This document shows positions 768 to 37,571 of a stretch of DNA of 64,000 bases, piece by piece (position 1 is the first letter of the stretch; each line of letters opens with the position of its first letter). A program made the translations under genes and the position numbers. The notes beneath the pieces were generated by a model. It did not search any database and had not been told where the DNA came from. It worked only from the letters and a program-made list of their open reading frames with translations. Origin of the DNA: Oopsacas minuta (Eukaryota > Animalia > Porifera); NCBI GenBank assembly GCA_024704765.1, contig JAKMXF010000310.1:186001-250000 (forward strand). The letters run 5' to 3'.

Positions 768-1756
768 TTAAACTTATGGTTTATGATAATGGAAAACTTT
801 TCAAGATTTATCTTTAGTAAAATGTATTTCACATCCTAGAAGAAAATAAGTCAACATAAATATTGAGTTTAACCGTGTTCCAAACCAGGGATATATTCTT
901 ATCATCAGTGATTCAGTAGCGCAGCAGCCTTATAGAATAGGTATGACTGACCAGGGCCGGATTTAAGAGTGGGTAGAGTGGGTAGCTGCCCACAAGCCCC
1001 CACAAAAACCAAGAAAAAGCTACATGCCATTTGGTTACCACTTATGGAGTGGATTCAGATGGATCCTTGTCAGACGAATTATTGCTATTCAAAGAGTTTG
1101 TTAAAGAATTGGATCTGATAACACCAGATTTAAATATATTTCACTTCATGTACAAACTATCATTGAAAAGTTTGTACACTGTACCTTTCCAAACATTAAA
1201 ATTGCATTACGCACTTACCTTATACTTAATAATAGCATTTCATCAAAAAGACAGCACAACTAAATGATTTATCCTACAGTAGATACAGTAAAACTCGTTT
1301 ATTACGTACTCAGCCGATATTTTCTCACATACAATAGAAATAATTCTGTAAATATGAACTAGGATAACATACCAAAATTCCTATCGAAAGTATAAAATAT
1401 ATTTGCCTTAGTTTGTTAAGTATGGTTCAGCTTGGTTAATAAGTATACTCTTAAGCAGTAGCGAAGACTAGGGGGTGCTTGACACTCCCAATATTTTCAG
1501 TGAAAGTGTGATTTCATTAGTGAGTGGACAAAATACATATTAGTCAAGTTTGACAATGGTGCACAAAGTAAAATCAAATTGAAAATTTTACTCATAAAAA
1601 ATATTCATACAGATAAGACGTACATGTCAAGTAAGTACATTTTTTGATTACCAAGCTGCTACGTATTGAGTGAGTTGACTCTGTATTGTATTACCCGATA
1701 TGCACTTTCCCTTGTATATAATATGCAAATAATTATTCTAGTATTCTTAACGCCAA

Positions 1757-3637
1757 ATGGCCATGAACGATGATATAGAAGTGTTGCGACCGATTGATGA
1801 TCTACAAGAATCCTTAAATTACGAAAGCTTTGAATCAGAATCTACATACAATATAGTTGAGTCTCTCACAACTTTTGTACAAGACGAGGAGGATGGAAAA
1901 TTTCCAATCTTGATCTTTGTAGGTCCCAAGGTTAAATTGTTTCGAATGGTACGTCTGTTCTGCTTCTTTTTGATTGTCTTACTGTATACTGTGTATTACG
2001 TAAATGCTAGAGAACTACTCATTTCATTAACTAGAGAAAGACTTGAGAAAGATGCTGATATTATCATATTCATGCCAGCGATACTAAACGGGCTGCCGCA
2101 GTTACTTTCAGTAGTATTTGGTTTTATATCAGATTACACTCGCTACCAGAGAGTGTATCTAATTCTTTATAGTTTTATGTTTTCCTCTTGTTCAGCTGTC
2201 TTCATGATGCTATGTAATTTCCTAATTAACCTGCAAATCCCGTATTCGCAGATTGAGCAGGCCTTTCACATTTTACTGTCTTCATCAATTATATTCTACG
2301 TTCTGGGATTGTCTATTTTCCTTCCGTTTTCATTGGCTTATGGACTTGATCTTTTACAAGGCACGAAATGGGAAGTCAAATATCTGTATTTCCCCATATA
2401 TTACATAGTGAGGAACTTGGGTTATTTTGGTGGAGTTTTGCGATACTTTTCATTTTCAGAGTCAAATTTGAAAAACAGTTATACTGCAATTTTCTCCCTC
2501 ATGATATCAACATTATTACTGTTTTTCATTTTCCGTATGTTTCGTATATTCCCAGGATTTGGAAAACCCAGGAAATTCGATGTAATATCAGTTCGTAAAG
2601 CATTTGAAATATTCTGGAATTCTTTGAAAGTGCTTCAAACAGGTCAAAGGTCGCCTCGAGGTCATTGGTTTATCCAGCTCTCATCTGACGCACATTACGG
2701 AAAGTATCCTAGGAAACAAGTGCAGATGGTTGCATCCTTTTTCGAAATAAATTTTTTGTTCATATTTATCATATCATTATTCATAACCACTCAGGCGATA
2801 TTCGATTTATTTGTACGACAAGCGCACCTTCTGAAATTACCAGTTTCTAATCTTACTGAGGTATTTTGTACGGGTGAGCGGAATACATCTATGTATAACT
2901 TCCGTTATATCAACAATGTCACAATTATCTTATTAACTCCATTTATTGAGTATTATTTTTACAAAATTATTTTCTTCTTCAATTCATCAGAAAATATTGA
3001 AAAGAATGATAATAAGAAATCATTGTGGAGAAATATACTGAGATGTCTCCGGTGTTTTGATCGCTATTGGCATATCTATGATCCTTTATTGAAGAGGATC
3101 TTCTGGGGTTCTATTTTCGGTCTCATTACCTTATTATTTGCTTTATCGGTCGAAATATCTCGCATATTAACTTTTGATGCTAGTTTCACATGTCCCAATA
3201 ACACCTTGTTCAACAAATACTCAACTGTCAGTATTTTCTCACAAATTCCCCAATACATTTCTTCTGCAGTCCTTGAGATTATATCTTACATTGGATGTCT
3301 TCAATTCGTATACTTTCAATCAAATAACACGTATAAAGATCAGCTGAAGGGTCTATTCTTTGGGCTATACTTTTTCTACATGGGGCTTTCATTTATAATT
3401 TGTCATCTGATATTTTACGTCATTGTCGTGCTTTGTCGTTCTAATTGCGGATATTGTCTAACCTATGATGAGTTATGTCCTTCTTCTACGTATACATTAA
3501 CTTGGATACCATATGTTATTCTGGGGATAGCCTCGTTTGTAGTTATACTGCTGTTTGCTTGGTTTGCACATTATCGCCATTATCAGCTGTCTAACATTAA
3601 TAGGAAAGGATCTTTCCGAGTTAACGAAGAAGGATGA
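1757..3637 (+). CDS. SLC15/POT (PTR2) family proton-dependent oligopeptide transporter-like MFS protein, single exon
   Basis: 626-aa ORF with many hydrophobic helices; C-terminal SIFSQIPQYISSAVLEIISYIGCLQFVY...LKGLFFG resembles the SLC15A3/4 motif IxWQIPQY...E...GLEF.Y...MGLFF. Confidence 0.7.
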   Translation: MAMNDDIEVLRPIDDLQESLNYESFESESTYNIVESLTTFVQDEEDGKFPILIFVGPKVKLFRMVRLFCFFLIVLLYTVYYVNARELLISLTRERLEKDADIIIFMPAILNGLPQLLSVVFGFISDYTRYQRVYLILYSFMFSSCSAVFMMLCNFLINLQIPYSQIEQAFHILLSSSIIFYVLGLSIFLPFSLAYGLDLLQGTKWEVKYLYFPIYYIVRNLGYFGGVLRYFSFSESNLKNSYTAIFSLMISTLLLFFIFRMFRIFPGFGKPRKFDVISVRKAFEIFWNSLKVLQTGQRSPRGHWFIQLSSDAHYGKYPRKQVQMVASFFEINFLFIFIISLFITTQAIFDLFVRQAHLLKLPVSNLTEVFCTGERNTSMYNFRYINNVTIILLTPFIEYYFYKIIFFFNSSENIEKNDNKKSLWRNILRCLRCFDRYWHIYDPLLKRIFWGSIFGLITLLFALSVEISRILTFDASFTCPNNTLFNKYSTVSIFSQIPQYISSAVLEIISYIGCLQFVYFQSNNTYKDQLKGLFFGLYFFYMGLSFIICHLIFYVIVVLCRSNCGYCLTYDELCPSSTYTLTWIPYVILGIASFVVILLFAWFAHYRHYQLSNINRKGSFRVNEEG

Positions 3638-5283
3638 GTGAAATTGTAGTTGTTTTGTGAAATTTAAAATTTTTATATTTTGTTGTTATATTTTCTTTTA
3701 TCTGCTTTCGTGGATTTTCTTAAAACTATATTTATAACTTTATTTGGTGTAATTACAAACTTCCAATCTATCCTTCTAGTGCTTTAAATCGACGCCATCC
3801 GTTAACTCGAACGTTCGCTATATCAAAGGATTTTGATATCCCCTGAGGTTCTAGTTACCGGAAGTTGACCGTATTTATAAATGACTAAATATTGTTATTA
3901 ATGCAAACAAACGGAGATCTCTATCTACAAATTTTCACATATTCAGGAAGAATTCAATATAATCCTGGAAATAAGATCCAGTAATAACTAATCATTATTG
4001 TGTAGCTAAAGGAACCTGAGCTGCATCCCGTTCTAACGACCCGCGTTTTATCATTGCTTAAACTCTTGTACCATTTGACGATTACATATATAATCCTGAA
4101 GAAATGAAGATTTTCCAAAAGGTGTGGTAATTTCACTTTAGAAAATTTCATACGCCTAGTTCAAATCTCCACCCATAAATGTATATAAGTCTATATCAAT
4201 TTTCGTTATTCAAACCATATATATATTTCGGTTGGTCGATTAGGGGTTTCTACCTAGATTATAGCTGGACCAAAACTGGAATCCTCAAATAATGACAAAA
4301 AAACCGGAAACTAAAGAAAATGAACCTACGTACGATTGATAATGTATTATAATTCTAGATATCTAGACAGAGTTGTGATTTGTGAGAACAAAGAACCTCG
4401 AGGCCTAGCTGATTGAAAAAGATATGAATGAGCATAATCTTGTGAAATTGCAAAAGAGTTCGATAGTAAACAATTATACTATTGGATTAAAATGTGGGTA
4501 TCATTACAGTTGTTGAAATATTAGATTAATTTCCATCATAAATTCATAATACATACAAAGACTGAAAGACATACAGCATCTTATCACATTGTTACTCTGT
4601 ACATTAAGATTCAAACCTAAGAATGTACACAGTGGAATCACGGCTATCAGAGTGCCTCTCGTCCAATAGTTTGGTGCCGCCCTGATATGAGGGAGTGTTA
4701 TCCTCGTGAGTGTATGTTAACTCCAATATTAATGTTAGAATATCTTATCCACTCGGCACAACCAGGCAGTTTAATAATATTTACATATATATTGCTAAAA
4801 ATACATGTTGTAGTAACAAAATATTTTTGTATAAGTCAGATACTATACCGTATGTACTAACTCTTAGAAATTATTCCGGTTTGGTCTAATCGTATCATCA
4901 GGATTCGGCCATTCATAGCATATACATCAACCGAACTGAATTTGATATAAGTAGAGTTCTGCCTTACGCTTAACTTTGTAACGCCATAGCTTATGGTCAC
5001 ACATATCCATGGAATCAATGCAATATTATCTTGGACACTGTAAATATTCTATAGACTATAACGGTCGAAGTATATTAATTTGCATGCAATTATACTATCA
5101 TAAATGTAGTTATACAATCATTTTTTGAACCTGAAATACAAGAGATCAGAGATGTTGACTATATTGATAGACTTTAATAATCTGAACAACGAAATAACTC
5201 AAATACAGCTTGTAACAGCTGTAACCCTATTTTTGGGTTATTAAACAATATTGAAAGCTATGACATAGCTATCACCTTAGTAA

Positions 5284-5675
5284 TCTATATTATTAAATCT
5301 CAATGATTGTTTGTTTGTTTGTCCATTGCCAACGAAAGGACTTACGGTATGCAATTTTGAAATTGTCGCACAACTATGTATTTATCGTGTTTATCAAGGA
5401 AGTGAAAGAATTCAATAATACTGCACTAAATATATTGAAAATCCTAAATCCGATTTTCACACTTTGGGATTAATCATATGAAATTTATTGTTGTTTTTAT
5501 GAATAAAAAGTAAACAAATTTCAAAATTGAGGTAGAATCATACTTTCAACGACTATACTGAGTTTGAATATTGTAAACAACACCAATATTATTAAATCTC
5601 AATTGTTGTTTGTCCGTTGAATACCTCGAGGCGCAATGCGCCAAGTTCATCGCGAAGCGACGAGCCAAAGGCTGG
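5284..5675 (+). mobile_element. non-autonomous Helitron-like element (copy 1)
   Basis: Inserted between A and T; starts TCTATATTATTAAA followed by (TTTG)n; ends with GC hairpins (GGCGCAATGCGCC, TCGCGAAGCGA) then CTGG (CTRR); no TSD; near-identical copies at 37677 and 52903. Confidence 0.7.
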
Positions 5676-6922
5676 TAATATAAATATTATAACCTATCAT
5701 GCATTCAAGGTGTATTAATTAATATTTCAGCATTGTTTATCAAGTAAACAAATTAGCCAAATTTCAAAATATACATACAGGCTTGCTCTAAACGGCTACA
5801 CAGTAAGTTATATTTCGACACAACAAGTGAAGCGGCTGGTACATTTAAACATTAATGTAACTTAAAGAACATCCAGTAAAATAGCTCTGTAAACAATATA
5901 CGTACTTTAATAATGTTAATTAATGAAGCAAATAAAGGTATTCTTGAATGTATGCCTCAAGGGTTCTACAATACAAATTTAGCTATCTAAATAGCAGAGC
6001 CACCTGATCTGAAATCGTGTATTGTTGAAAAAATTCTAAGTAATGGTTTCCCAATTCCAATCAATTCTGTATAATATTAACTACGGCATGGAGATAGGGA
6101 ATACCGATAAAAGAATACTTAACCACACACTTAACACAAGTAGTAATACAATTTTGTGCGCCAGCAATTATCGCCAACATGTGATCATAAAAATACAAGA
6201 CTAATAAATAGTATTATTAATGGGAAACAGTAAAAGTCTGGATTACTAGTTTTAAGTACAATAGATTGCATGCCTTAATTTCGGTGAAATCATTAAGTAA
6301 ATAGATTTATCGGAATTCCATCATTAATTCCATTGCACTTATACAGATGAGTGATCAAGCATATAAATTACTAATAATTATATGTAATTAATGTGGTGCT
6401 ATAGTCTGCATATGATAATATAACACACCAAACTTAATTAATACTCTTTATAGAATAGTTACATTGGAAACAAATATAATTGAGAGGTCCTGACTGTTCG
6501 CCCGATTATACAGTTTATTTAAGTTTCGTTGTTTCGTTGAATTAGCATTTTCAAAATGCTGTGTATATGCTTATGTACAATCTACGTCAACATTCGCTAT
6601 GTTAATTCGAACTCTCAACATTATAAAAATTGGTCGAATTAGCGAAAGAATAAGGATGCTGCCACTTTTGGGTTTCCCCAAGAGTTACGTTTTATTCGTA
6701 TTATGTAACAAATTATTGATTAAGTTTTTAGTGTCAATCAGCCAAGCTTAACTATCATAATAAATACATCCAACCGACTTTATAATTCCTCCAACAAAAA
6801 TATCTTGATTAATAAGATTAATATCTTTGTACTAATCTATTCTTGACGCAAAATTAGAATTAATGTCAGATCAAACAACAGTCCTGGCTTCACTAACAAA
6901 CATACATATTATAGTCTAAGAG

Positions 6923-21500: not shown

Positions 21501-22015
21501 AAAGGAGCTCAAATAAAGTAAATTAAACTATAAATTTCGGTAAAAATACAAATATCAAGAAAGAAGAAATTCGTGAAAAGAAAATACAATTAAACATCAA
21601 TACAAAATGTTGTATCTTGTATGTACTAGAATTGTACCTATTCAAAATTTCCCAATTATGCGAAACAATGCACTAAACTATTTCGATTGGATTCTCATAT
21701 CATCGCTTTGTCGAGAAAATATTATAAATTAAACTATACTATTTTCCTCGACACAAGCAGCTTTGCTTGCACGTGTCACGCGGTTTGCGAACACTCTGTG
21801 TTCGCATGTAGCTCAGCACTTCGTGCCTCGAATTTTTCATAAGAACAACTATTATTTACACATGAGTACGAAATTCGGAATCAACATACTAATTACCCTG
21901 GTATAACAGTAGAAACCAAACTATAAGAAATGTGTTTACTTTACACACCTAAACAACAACAATTGTCAACAAATATTCACAAGATGTTGTTGACAACTCA
22001 TATTTGGAAACAGGG

Positions 22016-24985
22016 CACAGTGGGCATTTTTGGGGGGTGAAATGGAAATAGGAAAACCATGCAAGGTAGAGATATATAATGCATTATTAGCCAATAGAAA
22101 TTACCCCTGAGAAAACGATTTCTGCATAAAAAAATCTAGGTCATCTCATTAAATGTTATGACGTCATGGACACCTTTCATATTATCATAAATTATAGTTT
22201 TTGAGCTTAAAATTCAGTTACTAGAGGCGATAGAAAGCTTATTTTGGATCATAGACACACATTTAACATACCCACATTTTAATAGTATCTTGTGCTTCCA
22301 TCTATTTCAATCATTATTTATTAGCAAGTTAATTGTGAGAAAAGAATTTCTTGGTCTGGAGGTTCAGAAGAGTGGGTTTTCTTGCTTGCTTTTGTAAATT
22401 TTCTATACACATTGAGGACAGGATCACTATTACACATCAGTCGTATAAAGATATCTCGAGTATTCAGAGAAAACGACATTTTTCTGGCAAGGTGTTCGCG
22501 ATACCTTCGAACGAGTTTGTTTGAAACTTCAACTGCTTCTTCAGAGAAGACTTTAAGTCCATGGCTATTGTTACAAGTTCTAATGAGTTCTGAAGAATGG
22601 GCTAGTAATTTATGCAAGGTTGGACTGATGTTTGCCCAAGGGAACCTGATTACAATGTATTTGTATGTGTCCTTGCAAAGAATATCCAGTCTTTCAGTGT
22701 TTATCTCTCGGTCGCTGTTGTAAATACGCAAACATACTGAAAGGTTAGTGTGGATGACCTTTATATTTTCATGGTATTCTGTTGGTATCAAGGAACAAAC
22801 CCAGTAAAGAAATTGGTTTTTGTCCAAGAAACAATTTCGAGCAACATTGCCAGTTGATGTAGTGCCACCATCACTGCTGGGTTGATCAATCTTCATACCA
22901 GCCTTTCCATCAATAAGCCTGAAACAAACTTCATTGAGTTTTTTATGCCTAAGGATGATGGTGACCACTTCCTTGCACCTGATTGCAGATGATAAACCAG
23001 GGTCATAAACCATCTGAAGATGCACAAATATGAATGTAATGGAGAAGAGCAAATTTGTCGATGTCGGAAATAGGTTGGTGAGTCAATCCAAGACGGTCAT
23101 TGGAACTTAGAGATAGAAATTCTACTTCATTCACACTTTGAAACAGTTCTTTAGCCGATGTTAGTGAACGATTAATAGGAAAACCATCTCGTATAAGTTC
23201 GACATCATGCAGTTGTTTGAAAGTCGCAGTACAGAGTTGGCAGTGAGCACCACCGGCTCCAGATAGAATTCCTGCCATTTTTCCATCGAACATGGTCCTG
23301 AGCAATTTTATCCTCACAAGTCCTTGCGAGAGTGGTATCCCATTTTCTTCCATGTCTGCTACGTAAGGATTGATATAAGTATCCATTAGATGACGTACAT
23401 TTCCGCTATTTTCTTTGGCAGCTAGTAAAGTGACTGGGTGAATCTGAAATTGTGAGTTGGGCCTTTCGTTTTCCCAAATAAGTTCGTTTGCGCTGTCGTC
23501 AATCGCGAGAAGTTTGAAAGCAAAGATAATGAAATTTTTGGAACCAATATTTGGTGACTCTTGAATCTGATTATAAACTTGATGGGATCCAGATCCATCC
23601 AAGCCATCTGTTGCAGAAAATGTCAACGGGAATTCAAATTCAGAATCTGTGGGAAGTGATTCGAGTAGGCGGGAAATTGTCTGTTTGATGATAGAGATGT
23701 AAGATATCCCTACTCCCATAGGCGTATCAGACACATTGCGGATAAAAATGAATTCCTTCTCCAGAGTAATATCTGCTCGATACTGGGAAATTAGCTCATA
23801 CTTAGGGAATAGTACATTGTCTGACTTACAAAGTCTCCTCAATTCAATGTACTTTCGCTTACCTATTTCCAGTTGCCCTAGGAGGAACGTAGACTTAGCA
23901 ATTGAGATGTGTCTTTATATTGCCTTGAAATGTGCCTTTGCTGACTATTTCCAGACAGAAGGAACTGGTGGAGTAATCTCCTGAAGAAGATGAGACAAAT
24001 TGCAGAGCCATGGCTGCTATCGTTTTGCTATCCACGTTCTCATTAGCTGCTAAGCTTTTAATCAGGGCTTCAAGAGGTTCCAGATGTACCCTTTGTCCTT
24101 TAATTGTTAATTCTAGGAATGGTTTCCTGATAGCCTTTGCATGAACTTGATTAGGAGTACAAATATCACCTTCAGACAATAACCGCCTCTTCTCTGCCAA
24201 TGTTGAATTGTCAAAGAATATCATATCATCCCATGTATTTAGGTCGTTTCTTTTACGAAATATCTCTCTATCACCCTTCAACTCAACGAATTTGTATCGG
24301 ATACAACTATAATATTTATCATCAAGTTGCTGACTATCCATAAATACGATTGTTGCATCTCTGACAGATTTACGTGAGGATAGAAAGTCAAAAGCTTCCT
24401 TGTTATTCATAATGCTAATATTTCATAGGGAAATTTTACATTAAAGTTACACCCATTCAAATGAATGTTTAATACTTTGGGCGCCCTCCGGCGGGTCTAA
24501 ACTATTATATTTTTTGAATGTATTATTATAACCTACATTTTAAGACCAGTGAGAGTTCACGCAATGAAACGCCACAACAAGTTTCAGCATAAAATATCCT
24601 GTGGACGCCGAAAAAAATGTCCTAAATAGTCATCGTGTTTTATCTAGTTTTAGAATAGAAAGTTAGAAACCAAACGACATTTCAAGATGTAAATTAGATA
24701 CTTGAAATATAAATGTTTCATTATTGTAAAGGAATTCTTTCTTCTTAGTTACAAGTGCTAAAAATATAACTATGAAACTTGATCGATTTTGATATACCAC
24801 ACAACAGAAATTCCAATTACAAGAAGCCGCAAATATTCATCACCATAACAACCAATTTACTTGTTGAATCAGAATGAAATTACTAATTTCTAGGTTTGAA
24901 ACGATTGTGAATTCAATGATAATAAGGAAATACAATTCTGAGGGGGTAAAAATTTCATGCTATTTCCAGCAAAAAGCCCACTGTG
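22016..24985 (-). mobile_element. Transib / RAG1-like DDE DNA transposon, full length (2,970 bp), RSS-like asymmetric TIRs
   Basis: Both termini begin CACAGTGGGC; perfect 5-bp TSD CAGGG (22011-22015 and 24986-24990); internal transposase with Transib/RAG1 motifs. Confidence 0.93.
22321..24410 (-). pseudogene. Transib/RAG1-like transposase, about 696 aa when three single-base frameshifts (about 23905, 23050, 22895) are repaired
   Basis: Catalytic D (GLDGSGSHQVY), D (TMFDGKM) and E (FSEEAVEVSNK); Zn ligands HCQLC and LHKLLAH; WENERPNS; SPLHSYL (in a third frame missed by the ORF track); GGTTSTGNVAR; RRYREHLARK...SDP; N-terminal segment similar to the RAG1 nonamer-binding domain. Confidence 0.88.
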
Positions 24986-27108
24986 CAGGGTACTTGATTA
25001 CCCCCAGTATAACCATTGAAATCAAGTTTCTGAGACTATTATGATATTCGTTTACTATATATACAGAAAAACAACAATTAATCTACATATGAGAAACTTG
25101 AAATTCGGATTCAGAATACTTGGATGCACCATTGTAGCCGTTAAGAGTAAGTCTATACGTATATTTTGATATTTCAATTATTGTTTATTTTATATTTATA
25201 AAGACAACAAATAAATTTACATATGGTTAATACTCAAAAGTGTAAACATCAGATTCAGCATTTTCGATATAATTGTTAAATTTTATTGAATTCTGTTTAC
25301 TCTTTTGGTAAACACAATAAATACGGTACATAGTTATGCGACATCTCATAATTGAGAAATTTGAATTTGATACAACATTCCATAAATTCTTCCCTTGACA
25401 ACGGACAAAATAGCAATTTAATAATATAGATTATTGGTATGTATTGTGTATTACAATGCATGTGTATATGGTATCAAATTGATGTATAGAACATTATTGT
25501 GTGGAATTAGAGTATAAAACCACAGATTATGCACATTCATTCATTTTATTTACTGATAGCAAAACAACATTGCAAAAACAAAACAATTTGCAAATTACAA
25601 TATTAGGACATCTTAGATGGTTTGAATAAATTTATAAAAGAGATCACATTAACTTGGACATTTACTCAGTCTTCAAACATTGAATATTCAAAAATAGTTT
25701 ATATAAATTTGTGCATCTTCAAGTCCAAAAAATACATAGAAAAAGACGACGATAACATTTACCCAATTCAACGGAAAATCGAACAATTTTTACTCAAATA
25801 AGTAATTAGGTTATTTGTTTTTTCTTTATGAGGTTGAACAGAAAACTCTCACAGAAGTTTGATACGTCTATAATTAACACAATTTTGTCTCAGTAATCGC
25901 GAAAAGTTTTGATATACGAATACACATATCATAAATCTTAAACAATTAAAATACACAAACCATAAAAATATACATACCTTTCACAAAATATTCATACTTA
26001 CAAGCAATTAATATATACATATGATGGAGTAATGGTGTTAATGGCGCATAAACGTATAAACCATATGAAGGATGGCTATGAAAGTTGTTAAGTAAATCTG
26101 AATGGATTCCTCAAATCTGGGACCCCCCAAAAAATCGAATACATAAGTGCATTGCGTACACAATACACTTACATTATTTCCTTAGAAAAGTAGCTAGTAC
26201 ACCTAGTGGTCCATGAGCACAGACTAATATTCGAGTAAATATGGTATAAACAATTACGTAGGAGAATCAAAATCATGAATATTTAACATCCAATAAACAA
26301 GAGTTCCGCTTTAAACTCAAATTAGACATAATACAATATTATTCAGCTATATTGTATGTTATCTGCATTTTAATAATAGTAATGAATAATTAAGTTAAGA
26401 ATAACATATAATTCCCTATGACACTAGAGTTCCCCTACAGGAAACCTGCGTATGTCTCCTGAATTGCCTTACAAAAATCCTATACAACTAATTATCTCTG
26501 TCGTAAAGCCTAATGGGTAGAGGAAGTTTCGTATCTATTGCTTGGCTACCCCTTAATTTTGTTCAGGGGATCATTACTCGGTGTTAGAAAAAATTCATTA
26601 ATCTAAGTAGTAAGTACTCGAATCAATTGCCCAAAATGTGTCCTAATTTATATATATTTGACTGGCATCCCTAGTACATATTCTGTATACGATAATACAG
26701 TAACAAATCAACTCAATAATACTACATACTTGAGGAAATAGTCCATACTATAACTATAACTACTAGTGATAAATTGTAATAAGAAAAGAGCTGTTTATTC
26801 ACTCTATTAACTTATCATATTAAAAGCCATGATTAATTTAATTCAAATGCTATACATCATTGCATTTTGTCACAGCAGACCCAGACACTGAGGTAGGCCA
26901 TATTTTACACTACTATCTTAAGCATTACGACACTTTGCATCGTGGATATACCACAAAACTATTCTTGGTTGTTTCTTGTTTATTCGTGATCGTGGAACTC
27001 AACAATTCATATACGTTACAAAGTAATATAATGAATAGTCTCTAGCCTAGTAAAATAATACATCCTCTAATTTCAACAGGGAGGGAGATCATATTTACAA
27101 ATTAAAAA

Positions 27109-35510: not shown

Positions 35511-37571
35511 TCATAAATATAAATCTATATCTATATCTATTTCCAAATTCATAGATACAAGTTTCTGAAGATATTTGATAAAGGAATAGCGAGTTATCCC
35601 TCCAGAGGTGCACGGTCCGTCTGGTCTTTGAATGCATTTCAGTTTCAAAATTAAGTCTCTACTTCCTGGATTCAAAATATCTGCATTCATCATAATTCTT
35701 TCATAAATATTCAATTCTCTTATTTCTTCTAAGTAATAGTTAGAAGCTTCTATCTTCATATTAGTACTAACACCTCTAGCTCTGTGAATAGTTTCTATAA
35801 TTATTTCAAAATTGAATTTAGAACCGATACTAATAGCACATTTAGAATATTTACAGATATCCTCATCTCCTTCTCCCTCCCAGGTATCACAGTCTTCTTT
35901 GGATAGCGTGCCTTGTCCAAACAGACATTTGAGTCCATCACCTAGATACACTAGTGGGAGTTTATTGAAGTAATACTCCATAGCATTCTCACGACTCTTC
36001 ATACTAACAGATAGAACTCTTCCCTCCACGGATACACTCCTACCAGCTAGATGCAGACATTTTAGCTGATATTTAGCCTCATTAACGTTATCCCAGCCTT
36101 CAGGGGGAGTACACCATTCATAATAGTTGTCCCAGGTGAGCGGAGGTAGTCTCCCAGAGCTGTGAATTAAGCCCTTAACAACACTGATTAATAACAGTAA
36201 TGCTAGCCCCACCCACAAAACACGAGTGAATGTTACATCAAATGGATCAATCGACAGGAACCAATCGTATATCCAGTGCTTAGTAAGGAATTGTGAAATT
36301 AGAATAGATAGTATAGTCAGTAATAAGAAGACACCAATACTCAACAAGCTGTATGACTGATAAAAGAATATTACGTGGAATAGTAGAGGTAATATCAAGT
36401 GGATTATGTAATTCCTTAATATGAAAATGATAAGAATGACTAATAACACTAGTGAGAATCCTTTAATAGACGCACTATCTAAAGAGGAGTATTGTCGTGC
36501 TACGAAGAATGTCTGTCCCCACAAGAGGAAGAACACATGCGGCCAAATCCTCAGTCCTAATCCATGCCCCACATATCTATACACAACCCATACAAATGAT
36601 AAGATGATTAACGTCAGTAGAATAACAGGTTGTAACGCATGTACTTCAATGTTAATAAGATAGAATAGAGCTAGTAAGCCAGGTAGCTTATTATGTCTTG
36701 CTATTAGTTGTGATGTAGAGCTGAGTATTAGGAAGAGAAGAGAGATAGCAGTTATTACACTAGAACCTGTCTCACTGACTGGTACTGACAGCAAGTACAC
36801 TATACAAGAGATAAGGAATACCAAATAAGATAGAGAAGATTTGCTTCTGAAATAATTAGTAAGAAAATTTTTTAAATCCTCTTTCACGGCTATTCTGGGA
36901 ATTATATTCTTTGAAGTGAATAACAGATCGAAGTTAGCTAGGATAATACGGTAGGAGTACACTGTCATGACACCGAAAGAGATGTACGTCATTGCCAGGG
37001 GTAGGATAGTTGAGAATATTCTGGGTTGTAACATTATATTGTACATGTAGAGAATGAATAACATGTGAAGTTCTTTGGATAAAGAAACTCTATTCAGGAA
37101 TAGTTTAACGCTAAAATGTTGTGCATTGGAGAGGCAGGACTTCGCTATTTCATAGAGACACAGTCTAGGAAATTTGAAGATTTTCTTAAATATTCCTGCT
37201 TCATTAAATTCACTCCATTCTGTGACATAACGAGATTGCTCATATGAAATGAATGAGGTTGTTAGAAACCCAGTATTCCCTCCTATAGCATCTTCAAACG
37301 CGACCTTAACGTCATCCCTAGTATAATCCTCTGTATCATTCTTCTTATGAACAAACCATTCTACAAATTCCTTCTGAGATGAAATAGTCAGTGCTTCGTT
37401 AGGGTTGATGGAGGGACCTACAGTCTCTTGAGGTTCTATTGCATCATCCATAGTATCATCTACTGAGTCAGGATGTGATACATATCCTATCCGGTTTCTT
37501 GAGTCTCGTCTCTTGAAATTTACTCTTCGTAACCCAGCCCATGCTGCGTCAATGCTTTTTTCAATATCCAT
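35511..37571 (-). CDS. WFS1: wolframin-like ER membrane protein, single exon
   Basis: Multi-TM core followed by LTWDNYYEWC...AKYQLKCLHLAGRSVSVEGRV, matching the WFS1 luminal motif LTWQQY..LC....TQILCSHLEGH.V.W.G.F. Confidence 0.82.
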   Translation of the reverse strand: MDIEKSIDAAWAGLRRVNFKRRDSRNRIGYVSHPDSVDDTMDDAIEPQETVGPSINPNEALTISSQKEFVEWFVHKKNDTEDYTRDDVKVAFEDAIGGNTGFLTTSFISYEQSRYVTEWSEFNEAGIFKKIFKFPRLCLYEIAKSCLSNAQHFSVKLFLNRVSLSKELHMLFILYMYNIMLQPRIFSTILPLAMTYISFGVMTVYSYRIILANFDLLFTSKNIIPRIAVKEDLKNFLTNYFRSKSSLSYLVFLISCIVYLLSVPVSETGSSVITAISLLFLILSSTSQLIARHNKLPGLLALFYLINIEVHALQPVILLTLIILSFVWVVYRYVGHGLGLRIWPHVFFLLWGQTFFVARQYSSLDSASIKGFSLVLLVILIIFILRNYIIHLILPLLFHVIFFYQSYSLLSIGVFLLLTILSILISQFLTKHWIYDWFLSIDPFDVTFTRVLWVGLALLLLISVVKGLIHSSGRLPPLTWDNYYEWCTPPEGWDNVNEAKYQLKCLHLAGRSVSVEGRVLSVSMKSRENAMEYYFNKLPLVYLGDGLKCLFGQGTLSKEDCDTWEGEGDEDICKYSKCAISIGSKFNFEIIIETIHRARGVSTNMKIEASNYYLEEIRELNIYERIMMNADILNPGSRDLILKLKCIQRPDGPCTSGGITRYSFIKYLQKLVSMNLEIDIDIDLYL

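Follow-up and report, generated by a model that had tools for sequence, protein, structure and literature searches.

The asymmetric ends considered here belong to a Transib transposon at positions 22016-24985 of a 64,000-nucleotide stretch (the window) of the genome of the glass sponge Oopsacas minuta (assembly GCA_024704765.1, contig JAKMXF010000310.1). Their short-5′/long-3′ design is already published for Transibs, having first been reported in 2005 and then, in 2022, extended to Transibs more generally, with non-bilaterian and bacterial ones included. Kapitonov and Jurka (2005) reported Transib families whose 5′ ends resemble a vertebrate recombination signal sequence of the 12-bp spacer class (RSS12) and whose 3′ ends resemble one of the 23-bp class (RSS23), namely Transib5 in D. 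melanogaster and Transib2_AG and TransibN1-3_AG in A. gambiae, and found the 12/23 rule to be derivable from such terminal inverted repeats (TIRs) (PMC1131882). A later hypothesis was built on these 12/23 Transibs (Yakovenko et al., 2021; PMC8355894), and a survey that included ctenophore, fungal and bacterial Transibs found asymmetric TIRs in all members of ‘Subgroup I’, an equivalent of the RAG1 nonamer-binding domain (NBD) in both subgroups, and a protist RAG-like (RAGL) transposon with 4/13 spacers (Tao et al., 2022; PMC9435367). Martin et al. (2023) list the NBD, the CCGHC tail and the asymmetry of TIRs as features already identified in Transibs, and it has been proposed that enzymes dependent on a CCGHC-type tail are insensitive to TIR asymmetry (Martin et al., 2020). 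Sponges are not named in the text of Tao et al. (2022; PMC9435367), nor was a paper describing Transibs in sponges found in the literature searchable here, as far as which shows the present element extends documented Transibs to a new host phylum, Porifera.

Structure and mobility of the sponge element

Judged by its sequence features, the element is a Transib DNA transposon with a single gene for a RAG1-like DDE transposase and no RAG2. It ends in CAC heptamers, is flanked by a target-site duplication (TSD) of 5 bp, encodes a transposase whose similarity to Transib exceeds that to RAG1 and RAG1L, and contains no RAG2-like gene; the convergent gene pair between TIRs that marks RAG1L+RAG2L transposons, in which RAG2L is a kelch gene with or without PHD, was not found in 22016-24985. 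A preliminary description of this stretch had rightly recognised a RAG1-related, RAG2-less element (one RAG1-like gene of ~696 codons in 2,970 bp) in a non-bilaterian host, which is a hexactinellid sponge; the names that NCBI gives to close homologues likewise read Oopsacas minuta. Its label ‘RAG-like transposon’ has to give way to Transib, in view of the single gene, the missing RAG2L and the far stronger similarity to Transib. Its reading of the ends (CACAGTG, 20- and 10-bp spacers, an identical 9-bp block) is exact to the coordinate. The terminal features, from left to right, are as follows.

22011..22015, no strand: TSD CAGGG, left copy (the 5 bp outside both heptamers are identical)
22016..22051, minus strand: 3′ (long) end, made up, as read on the plus strand, of CACAGTG (22016-22022), a 20-bp spacer (GGCATTTTTGGGGGGTGAAA, 22023-22042) and the 9-mer TGGAAATAG (22043-22051); from the sequence and contigs, 20 bp also in L001, L007, L008 and L012
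22052..22075, minus strand: 3′ subterminal stretch beginning GAAAACCATGCAAG, similar in the closest relatives
24960..24985, minus strand: 5′ (short) end, made up, when reverse-complemented, of CACAGTG (24985-24979), a 10-bp spacer (GGCTTTTTGC, 24978-24969) and the 9-mer TGGAAATAG (24968-24960); 10 bp also in L001, L007, L012, L003, L013 and L010/L011
24986..24990, no strand: TSD CAGGG, right copy (the 5 bp outside both heptamers are identical)

The perfect direct repeat CAGGG, which the preliminary description had not listed, abuts both heptamers on their outer side, and a 5-bp target duplication is a hallmark of Transib and RAG. The boundary is confirmed by contigs of other insertions, which break off at 22014-22016 and diverge there into many different flanks. 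Between these limits lie 2,970 bp, with the 10-bp spacer at the end next to the 5′ side of the transposase gene and the 20-bp spacer at its 3′ side. The inner block common to both ends is exactly 9 bp in the window copy, and when the two ends are aligned with each other the heptamer is followed by GGC(A)TTTTTG and, after an additional 10 bp in one end only, by the 9-mer. The pattern CACAGTG-N(8-24)-TGGAAATAG occurs at two sites in the 64 kb, both of them ends of the element, and is absent from all 100 of 100 dinucleotide-preserving shuffles.

The 9-mer by itself has six occurrences in the window, where 0.74 would be expected. The matches at 35537 and 47898 have no heptamer near them and were set aside as chance. 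Two more exact copies of (C)TGGAAATAG lie in the coding region (23863-23871 and 23945-23953, minus strand), oriented as at the 5′ end. Each of the two codes for a conserved L-E-I motif; by their sequence they may be a coding coincidence or internal transposase-binding sites.

A second copy in the same assembly (L001:3401-6377 of GCA_024704765.1) is 98.5% identical, sits at a different site with the TSD TATAG and has its own private frameshifts. It retains the same 10/20 ends. In the genome's own sequencing run, k-mer depth is ~130-240 at the unique junction and reaches thousands inside the element end, and a paralogue of the flanking repeat spans the insertion point without the element (joint 21996>24991). 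Because of the copy at another site, the rise in depth, the many flanks and the empty paralogue, the family can be regarded as young and multi-copy and as having transposed; the window element is, on this genomic evidence, a decayed copy of a young multi-copy O. minuta Transib.

The flanks themselves (21700-22015 and 24986-25300) consist of a high-copy satellite-like repeat, units of which with TTCGGAATCAACATACT recur on both sides and in which the summed contig depth is ~1,200-6,400 as against the ~130-240 of the unique junction. Sequencing runs of three other organisms (X5, X6 and X8) contain the Transib family at mostly 95-99% identity with different flanks, and the repeat that flanks the window element is absent from these three runs. 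This distribution points to close host relatives or to horizontal transfer.

Conservation of the ends in diverged relatives

The layout of the ends was followed into relatives by taking the DNA around diverged transposases and locating the ends by heptamer and TSD. Complete end pairs came from the following loci, given with their amino-acid identity.

L007: 76% amino-acid identity, 66.6% nucleotide identity over the element; 5′ CACAGTG + 10 + TGGAAATAC; 3′ CACAGTG + 20 + TGGAAATAG; TSD AACCA
L012: 63% amino-acid identity; 5′ CACAGTG + 10 + TGGAAGTAG; 3′ CACAGTG + 20 + TGGAAGTAG
L010 and L011: 55% amino-acid identity; 5′ CACAGTG + 10 + AAAGAATAG; 3′ CACAGTG + 19 + AAAGAATAG; both from O. minuta, with TSDs CTCTT (L010) and CCTAC (L011)

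Single ends were obtained from L003 (5′ end, 10 + GGGAAATAG), L013 (short end, 10) and L008 (long end, 20). The short ends, six in number, all have a spacer of exactly 10 bp. The long spacer of L007 is held at 20 bp by two compensating indels (T5>T6 and TGAAA>TAAG), in an element whose alignment with that of the window has 66.6% identity and ~4% gap positions over the whole length. In the genome's own run the long end shows no indels, and in the runs of other organisms only minority variants of +/-1 were seen. The 9-mer, for its part, changes in step at both ends, reading TGGAAGTAG at both in L012 and AAAGAATAG at both in L010/L011; in L012 the same base change is thus present at either end, while only ~9 of the 20 bases of the long spacer are those of the window copy. 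The tip heptamers of the relatives are CACAGTG or CACAATG. Mean pairwise identity is 0.95-1.0 in the heptamer, 0.75-0.94 in the 9-mer, 0.40-0.59 in the spacer and 0.36-0.51 in the next 15 nucleotides. In terms of sequence conservation this profile is that of RSSs, with spacer length held and spacer sequence drifting. Co-variation and compensating indels are stronger arguments here than constant spacing. This conservation gives good support to a role of the 9-mer in binding, and the 9-mer probably represents a selected transposase-binding site.

Some loci yielded less. The metagenome contigs L002, L005 and L006, which hold relatives at 44-46%, lack 5′ ends or are truncated, and no end pairs could be scored in them; no ends were found at L009 or around L008's own gene. 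Candidate 3′ ends of L003 had no matching TSD and only its 5′ end was accepted. The long-type end in L008 (9431-9466; CACAGTG + 20 bp + TGGAAATAG + GAAAACTATGC) belongs to another Transib in the opposite orientation, which lies ~3.8 kb away from the gene used as query and extends beyond the locus. L010 and L011 are ~104 kb apart on JAKMXF010000299.1 and have identical 480- and 223-amino-acid products with different TSDs, and this second O. minuta Transib family (10/19) looks recently active from its sequence.

The transposase and its N-terminal domain

The transposase is encoded on the minus strand, where the window copy has three overlapping open reading frames (ORFs) of 171, 279 and 243 codons; a tblastn frame map resolves these into four collinear segments in three frames, for a gene of ~696 codons. 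In a search against solved structures the middle piece matched the Helicoverpa zea transposase HzTransib (6pqn) at E 7e-7 and the C-terminal piece at E 2e-13. Matches of the ORF pieces to RAG1 (E 0.2 against 2e-13 for HzTransib) and to amphioxus RAG1L were far weaker, and a Pfam search with the three pieces gave RAG1 matches below threshold only. A profile of full-length relatives gives HzTransib at 3e-99, BbeRAG1L at 2e-50 and RAG1 at 4e-38. The parts of the gene are listed in the direction of transcription.

24411..24959, minus strand: 5′ non-coding region from the short end to the ATG, presumed promoter and leader; no transposase-related ORF
23908..24410, minus strand: transposase segment 1 (N-terminal), with the ATG at 24410, ending at a private 2-nt deletion near 23907-23913 (ORFs, other copies, frame map)
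23997..24131, minus strand: NBD-like three-helix domain, IRKPFLELT...AAMALQF (profile, AlphaFold model, Foldseek)
23057..23911, minus strand: transposase segment 2 (pre-RNase H, RNase H and ZnC2 regions; alignment to 6pqn and RAG1)
In segment 2, minus strand: 23597-23599 and 23285-23287, candidate catalytic D residues; CxxC at 23240-23242 and 23231-23233 (alignment to 6pqn and RAG1, invariant columns)
~23056 and ~22904-22907, minus strand: two private 1-nt deletions bounding segment 3 (other copies, L001 gaps, tblastn)
22905..23054, minus strand: transposase segment 3, in the third frame (other copies, L001 gaps, tblastn)
22324..22917, minus strand: transposase segment 4 (C-terminal), with the stop at 22321-22323 (ORFs, 6pqn match, frame map)
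In segment 4, minus strand: 22528-22530, candidate catalytic E; 22612-22614 and 22597-22599, zinc ligands H..H (6pqn alignment, invariant columns)

Contigs of the genome's own run carry additional nucleotides relative to the window copy (+TG at ~23907, +A at ~23055 and +T at ~22903), and when the window copy is compared with the second genomic copy L001 it has gaps at these same three places. Introns were ruled out as an explanation for the split ORFs, the breaks coinciding precisely with the sites at which other copies have +2, +1 and +1 nt. On the frame map, the window copy is dead: three private frameshift deletions (2, 1 and 1 nt) break the gene and leave it unable to make transposase. Its intact ends could be mobilised in trans. 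There is no ORF for a second gene in 22016-24985, nor room for one in 2,970 bp, and no further RAG- or Transib-like ORF was found in the window.

What might read the 9-mers is suggested by the N-terminus. A profile of this region, built from the element and its relatives, matched only RAG1 in the PDB, and did so at the NBD (zebrafish RAG1, 3jbw, E 5.6e-5; the isolated NBD–DNA structure 3gna, E 1.6e-4). The AlphaFold model of the window's own N-terminal segment is a confident three-helix unit, with a predicted local distance difference test (pLDDT) score of 82. In a Foldseek search of the PDB, all the top 21 matches were RAG1 chains (3gna_A at a template-modelling score of 0.71 and a root-mean-square deviation of 2.4 Å). 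By profile and predicted fold, the N-terminal domain is homologous to the RAG1 NBD, and because of this double match the N-terminus is the likely reader of the 9-mer. The solved HzTransib chain aligns to the profile only after its NBD-like region.

At the other end of the protein the window copy lacks a CCHC zinc-knuckle tail. A CxxCGxxGH...C zinc knuckle (CTT1/CCGHC type) ends the transposases of L012, L003, L010, L004, P0025, P0018 and P0027. In the window family and L007 (76% identical) the loss of the tail took the form of an in-frame replacement in which the last ~15 residues (region 22324-22420) are kept. Some 50 profile positions after the CxxC, absent from HzTransib, are aligned in RAG1 and BbeRAG1L and present in the window copy; their match to alpha11-alpha12 of ZnB is judged by position alone.

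Resemblance to other Transib and RAG systems

The insect Transibs with RSS12- and RSS23-like ends share with the sponge element a single gene without RAG2, the 5-bp TSD and CAC tips, as well as the placement of the second block, which is nearer at the 5′ end and about one turn farther at the 3′ end, with the same polarity relative to the gene. They differ in their spacers (12/23 rather than 10 / 19-20) and in an inner block that is A-rich, of the ACAAAAACC/AAAAAAATC type, whereas that of the sponge is TGGAAATAG-like; the glass-sponge host and the recognisable NBD-like domain of the sponge transposase set the two further apart. With Subgroup I of Tao et al. (2022) the sponge group has in common asymmetric TIRs and an NBD equivalent; a stretch after its CxxC may, by position, correspond to the ZnB segment that the HzTransib-type Subgroup II lacks, and close relatives of the window element carry the CCHC ‘CTT1’ tail, although the window family and L007 have lost this (CCGHC) tail. 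In these features alone the sponge group resembles Subgroup I.

HzTransib, which has reportedly been studied by Hencken in 2012 and Liu in 2019, offers the closest solved structure (6pqn), with the same catalytic core and the same CxxC and H..H motifs. Unlike the window group, its chain aligns only after the NBD-like region and is without the ~50 residues after CxxC, and its TIRs have ‘little or none’ of a similarity to the RSS nonamer (PMC4840297).

The vertebrate RAG1/RAG2 recombinase and its RSSs recall the sponge system in the heptamer CACAGTG, in the order of heptamer, spacer and 9-mer, in two spacer classes one turn apart, in a spacer whose length is more conserved than its sequence, in an NBD-like domain and in the absence of a CCHC tail. 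The sponge element, in contrast, has no RAG2 and is a mobile transposon rather than a domesticated recombinase; its 9-mer sequence and spacer lengths differ from those of RSSs. RAGL transposons (AanRAGL with 4/13 spacers, ProtoRAG with 27/31, PflRAGL-A) likewise have bipartite ends with an asymmetry of 9-11 bp (or 4 bp) and a 5-bp TSD (PMC9435367; bioRxiv 10.1101/2023.08.20.553239), but they possess a RAG2L gene, of which the sponge element has none.

A possible pairing of unequal ends and its alternatives

For RAG and HzTransib, the described mechanism involves nick-hairpin cleavage and 5-bp staggered integration (PMC10629977). In the sponge, a transposase dimer would cut at the heptamers with its RNase-H-like core while the NBD-like dimer would grip both 9-mers. 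In RAG structures, one NBD dimer holds both nonamers. With the one-turn offset the two 9-mers would face the same side of the DNA at different distances, and because of this offset a productive synapse would form most easily between one short and one long end, i.e. across one whole element. As a whole, the account of a decayed copy of a young Transib, with bipartite ends, 9-mers read by an NBD-like dimer and a favoured short–long synapsis, is probable. Its boldest parts are less secure. A strict RAG-like requirement for one short plus one long end is conceivable but somewhat doubtful, and it is rather unlikely that the transposase alone enforces 10/20 pairing through its NBD-like dimer, without RAG2 and without the CCHC tail with which other invertebrate RAG1-like enzymes grip their ends. 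To say, as the preliminary description did, that the element already uses a helical-phase pairing rule would overstate the case.

Several observations weigh against this account. RAG1 without RAG2 loses its 12/23 preference (Carmona et al., 2016; PMC4840297), so that a RAG2-less enzyme need not enforce a pairing rule. The asymmetry is not universal, because in L004 (50% amino-acid identity) the 3′ end has a 19-bp spacer and no recognisable short 5′ end or 9-mer at 10 bp is present. In the families at 76, 63 and 55% the spacing of 10 / 19-20 is kept. The compared families are, moreover, kin, and part of the constant spacing could be inheritance. Regarding the N-terminal domain, the match is statistically weak (profile E ~1e-4, Foldseek E 0.17-3, for a helical domain of 60-70 residues), these modest values being due to the small size of the domain, and RAG1's GGRPR motif is not conserved, the window copy reading AIRKP in its place.

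The element in L004 (3290-6372) is flanked by GTGTA as a perfect TSD and has a perfect terminal repeat of 12 bp, and its 5′ end bears a GGCAGT block typical of long ends; judging from this arrangement, the element may have two long ends or be a rearranged variant.

If no pairing rule existed, the asymmetry could still be functional, much as the left and right ends of many DNA transposons are unlike, through different affinities of the ends, an order of assembly, or room for a promoter or terminator, and any combination of ends that binds would be cut. This explanation is on balance unlikely. In its favour, RAG1 on its own does not prefer 12/23 pairs and HzTransib is active on pairs of 12/12 RSSs (PMC4840297), and the missing short 5′ end of L004 agrees with it. 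The ends also differ in more than their spacing, because only the 3′ end of the closest relatives has conserved sequence beyond the 9-mer: GAAAAC(C/T)AT... directly follows the long-end 9-mer in the window copy, L001, L007 and L008 (but not in L012 or L010), with no counterpart at the 5′ end. What it leaves unaccounted for is that a difference of 9-10 bp, one helical turn, is held in several diverged families while the spacers drift, and that a step of 9-11 bp recurs in RSSs, in AanRAGL (4/13) and in insect Transibs (12/23).

Less probable again, and by a good way, is that the 10-bp difference is a neutral ancestral indel, that the heptamer and the bases next to it suffice, and that the 9-mer is what remains of a longer perfect inverted repeat. 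The alignment of the ends, with its 10-bp insert between GGC(A)TTTTTG and the 9-mer, does look like the result of a single indel, and the related families share ancestry and are not independent samples. A neutral remnant would, however, hardly co-vary at both ends while the sequence just inside is unalignable, nor would compensating indels be expected to hold the L007 long spacer at 20 bp, or all six short ends to stay at 10 bp in elements only 66.6% identical and with ~4% gaps. That the element is the remnant of a RAG1L+RAG2L transposon after loss of RAG2L is highly improbable. Such an origin would fit the RAG1-like features that HzTransib lacks (the NBD-like domain and the segment after CxxC), but the 2,970 bp between the TSDs are filled by one gene of ~696 codons and short non-coding ends, the complete elements of relatives span just 2.9-3.3 kb (the transposase being the only gene looked for inside them), and in sequence Transib is by far the closer match, ahead of both RAG1 and RAG1L.

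Implications for the 12/23 rule

How the 12/23 rule arose is still a matter of debate. A link to RAG2 is drawn by Carmona et al. (2016; PMC4840297), while Kapitonov and Jurka (2005) and Tao et al. (2022) place asymmetric ends before RAG2, arguing from sequence alone. The suggestion of the preliminary description that the element is a candidate early model of the rule holds in the sense that it makes a good experimental model; the principle itself is not new, having been set out in the two latter studies. The sponge family offers a convenient natural pair of substrate and enzyme, being young, multi-copy and single-gene, with clean 10/20 ends and an NBD-like domain. The absence of a zinc-knuckle tail in the window family parallels vertebrate RAG1, and in the light of the proposal of Martin et al. 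(2020) a Transib that has an NBD and no tail is a sharper test case. If the transposase alone does enforce 10/20 pairing, a 12/23-type rule would be older than RAG2 and independent of it, and would be open to study in a simple one-protein system.

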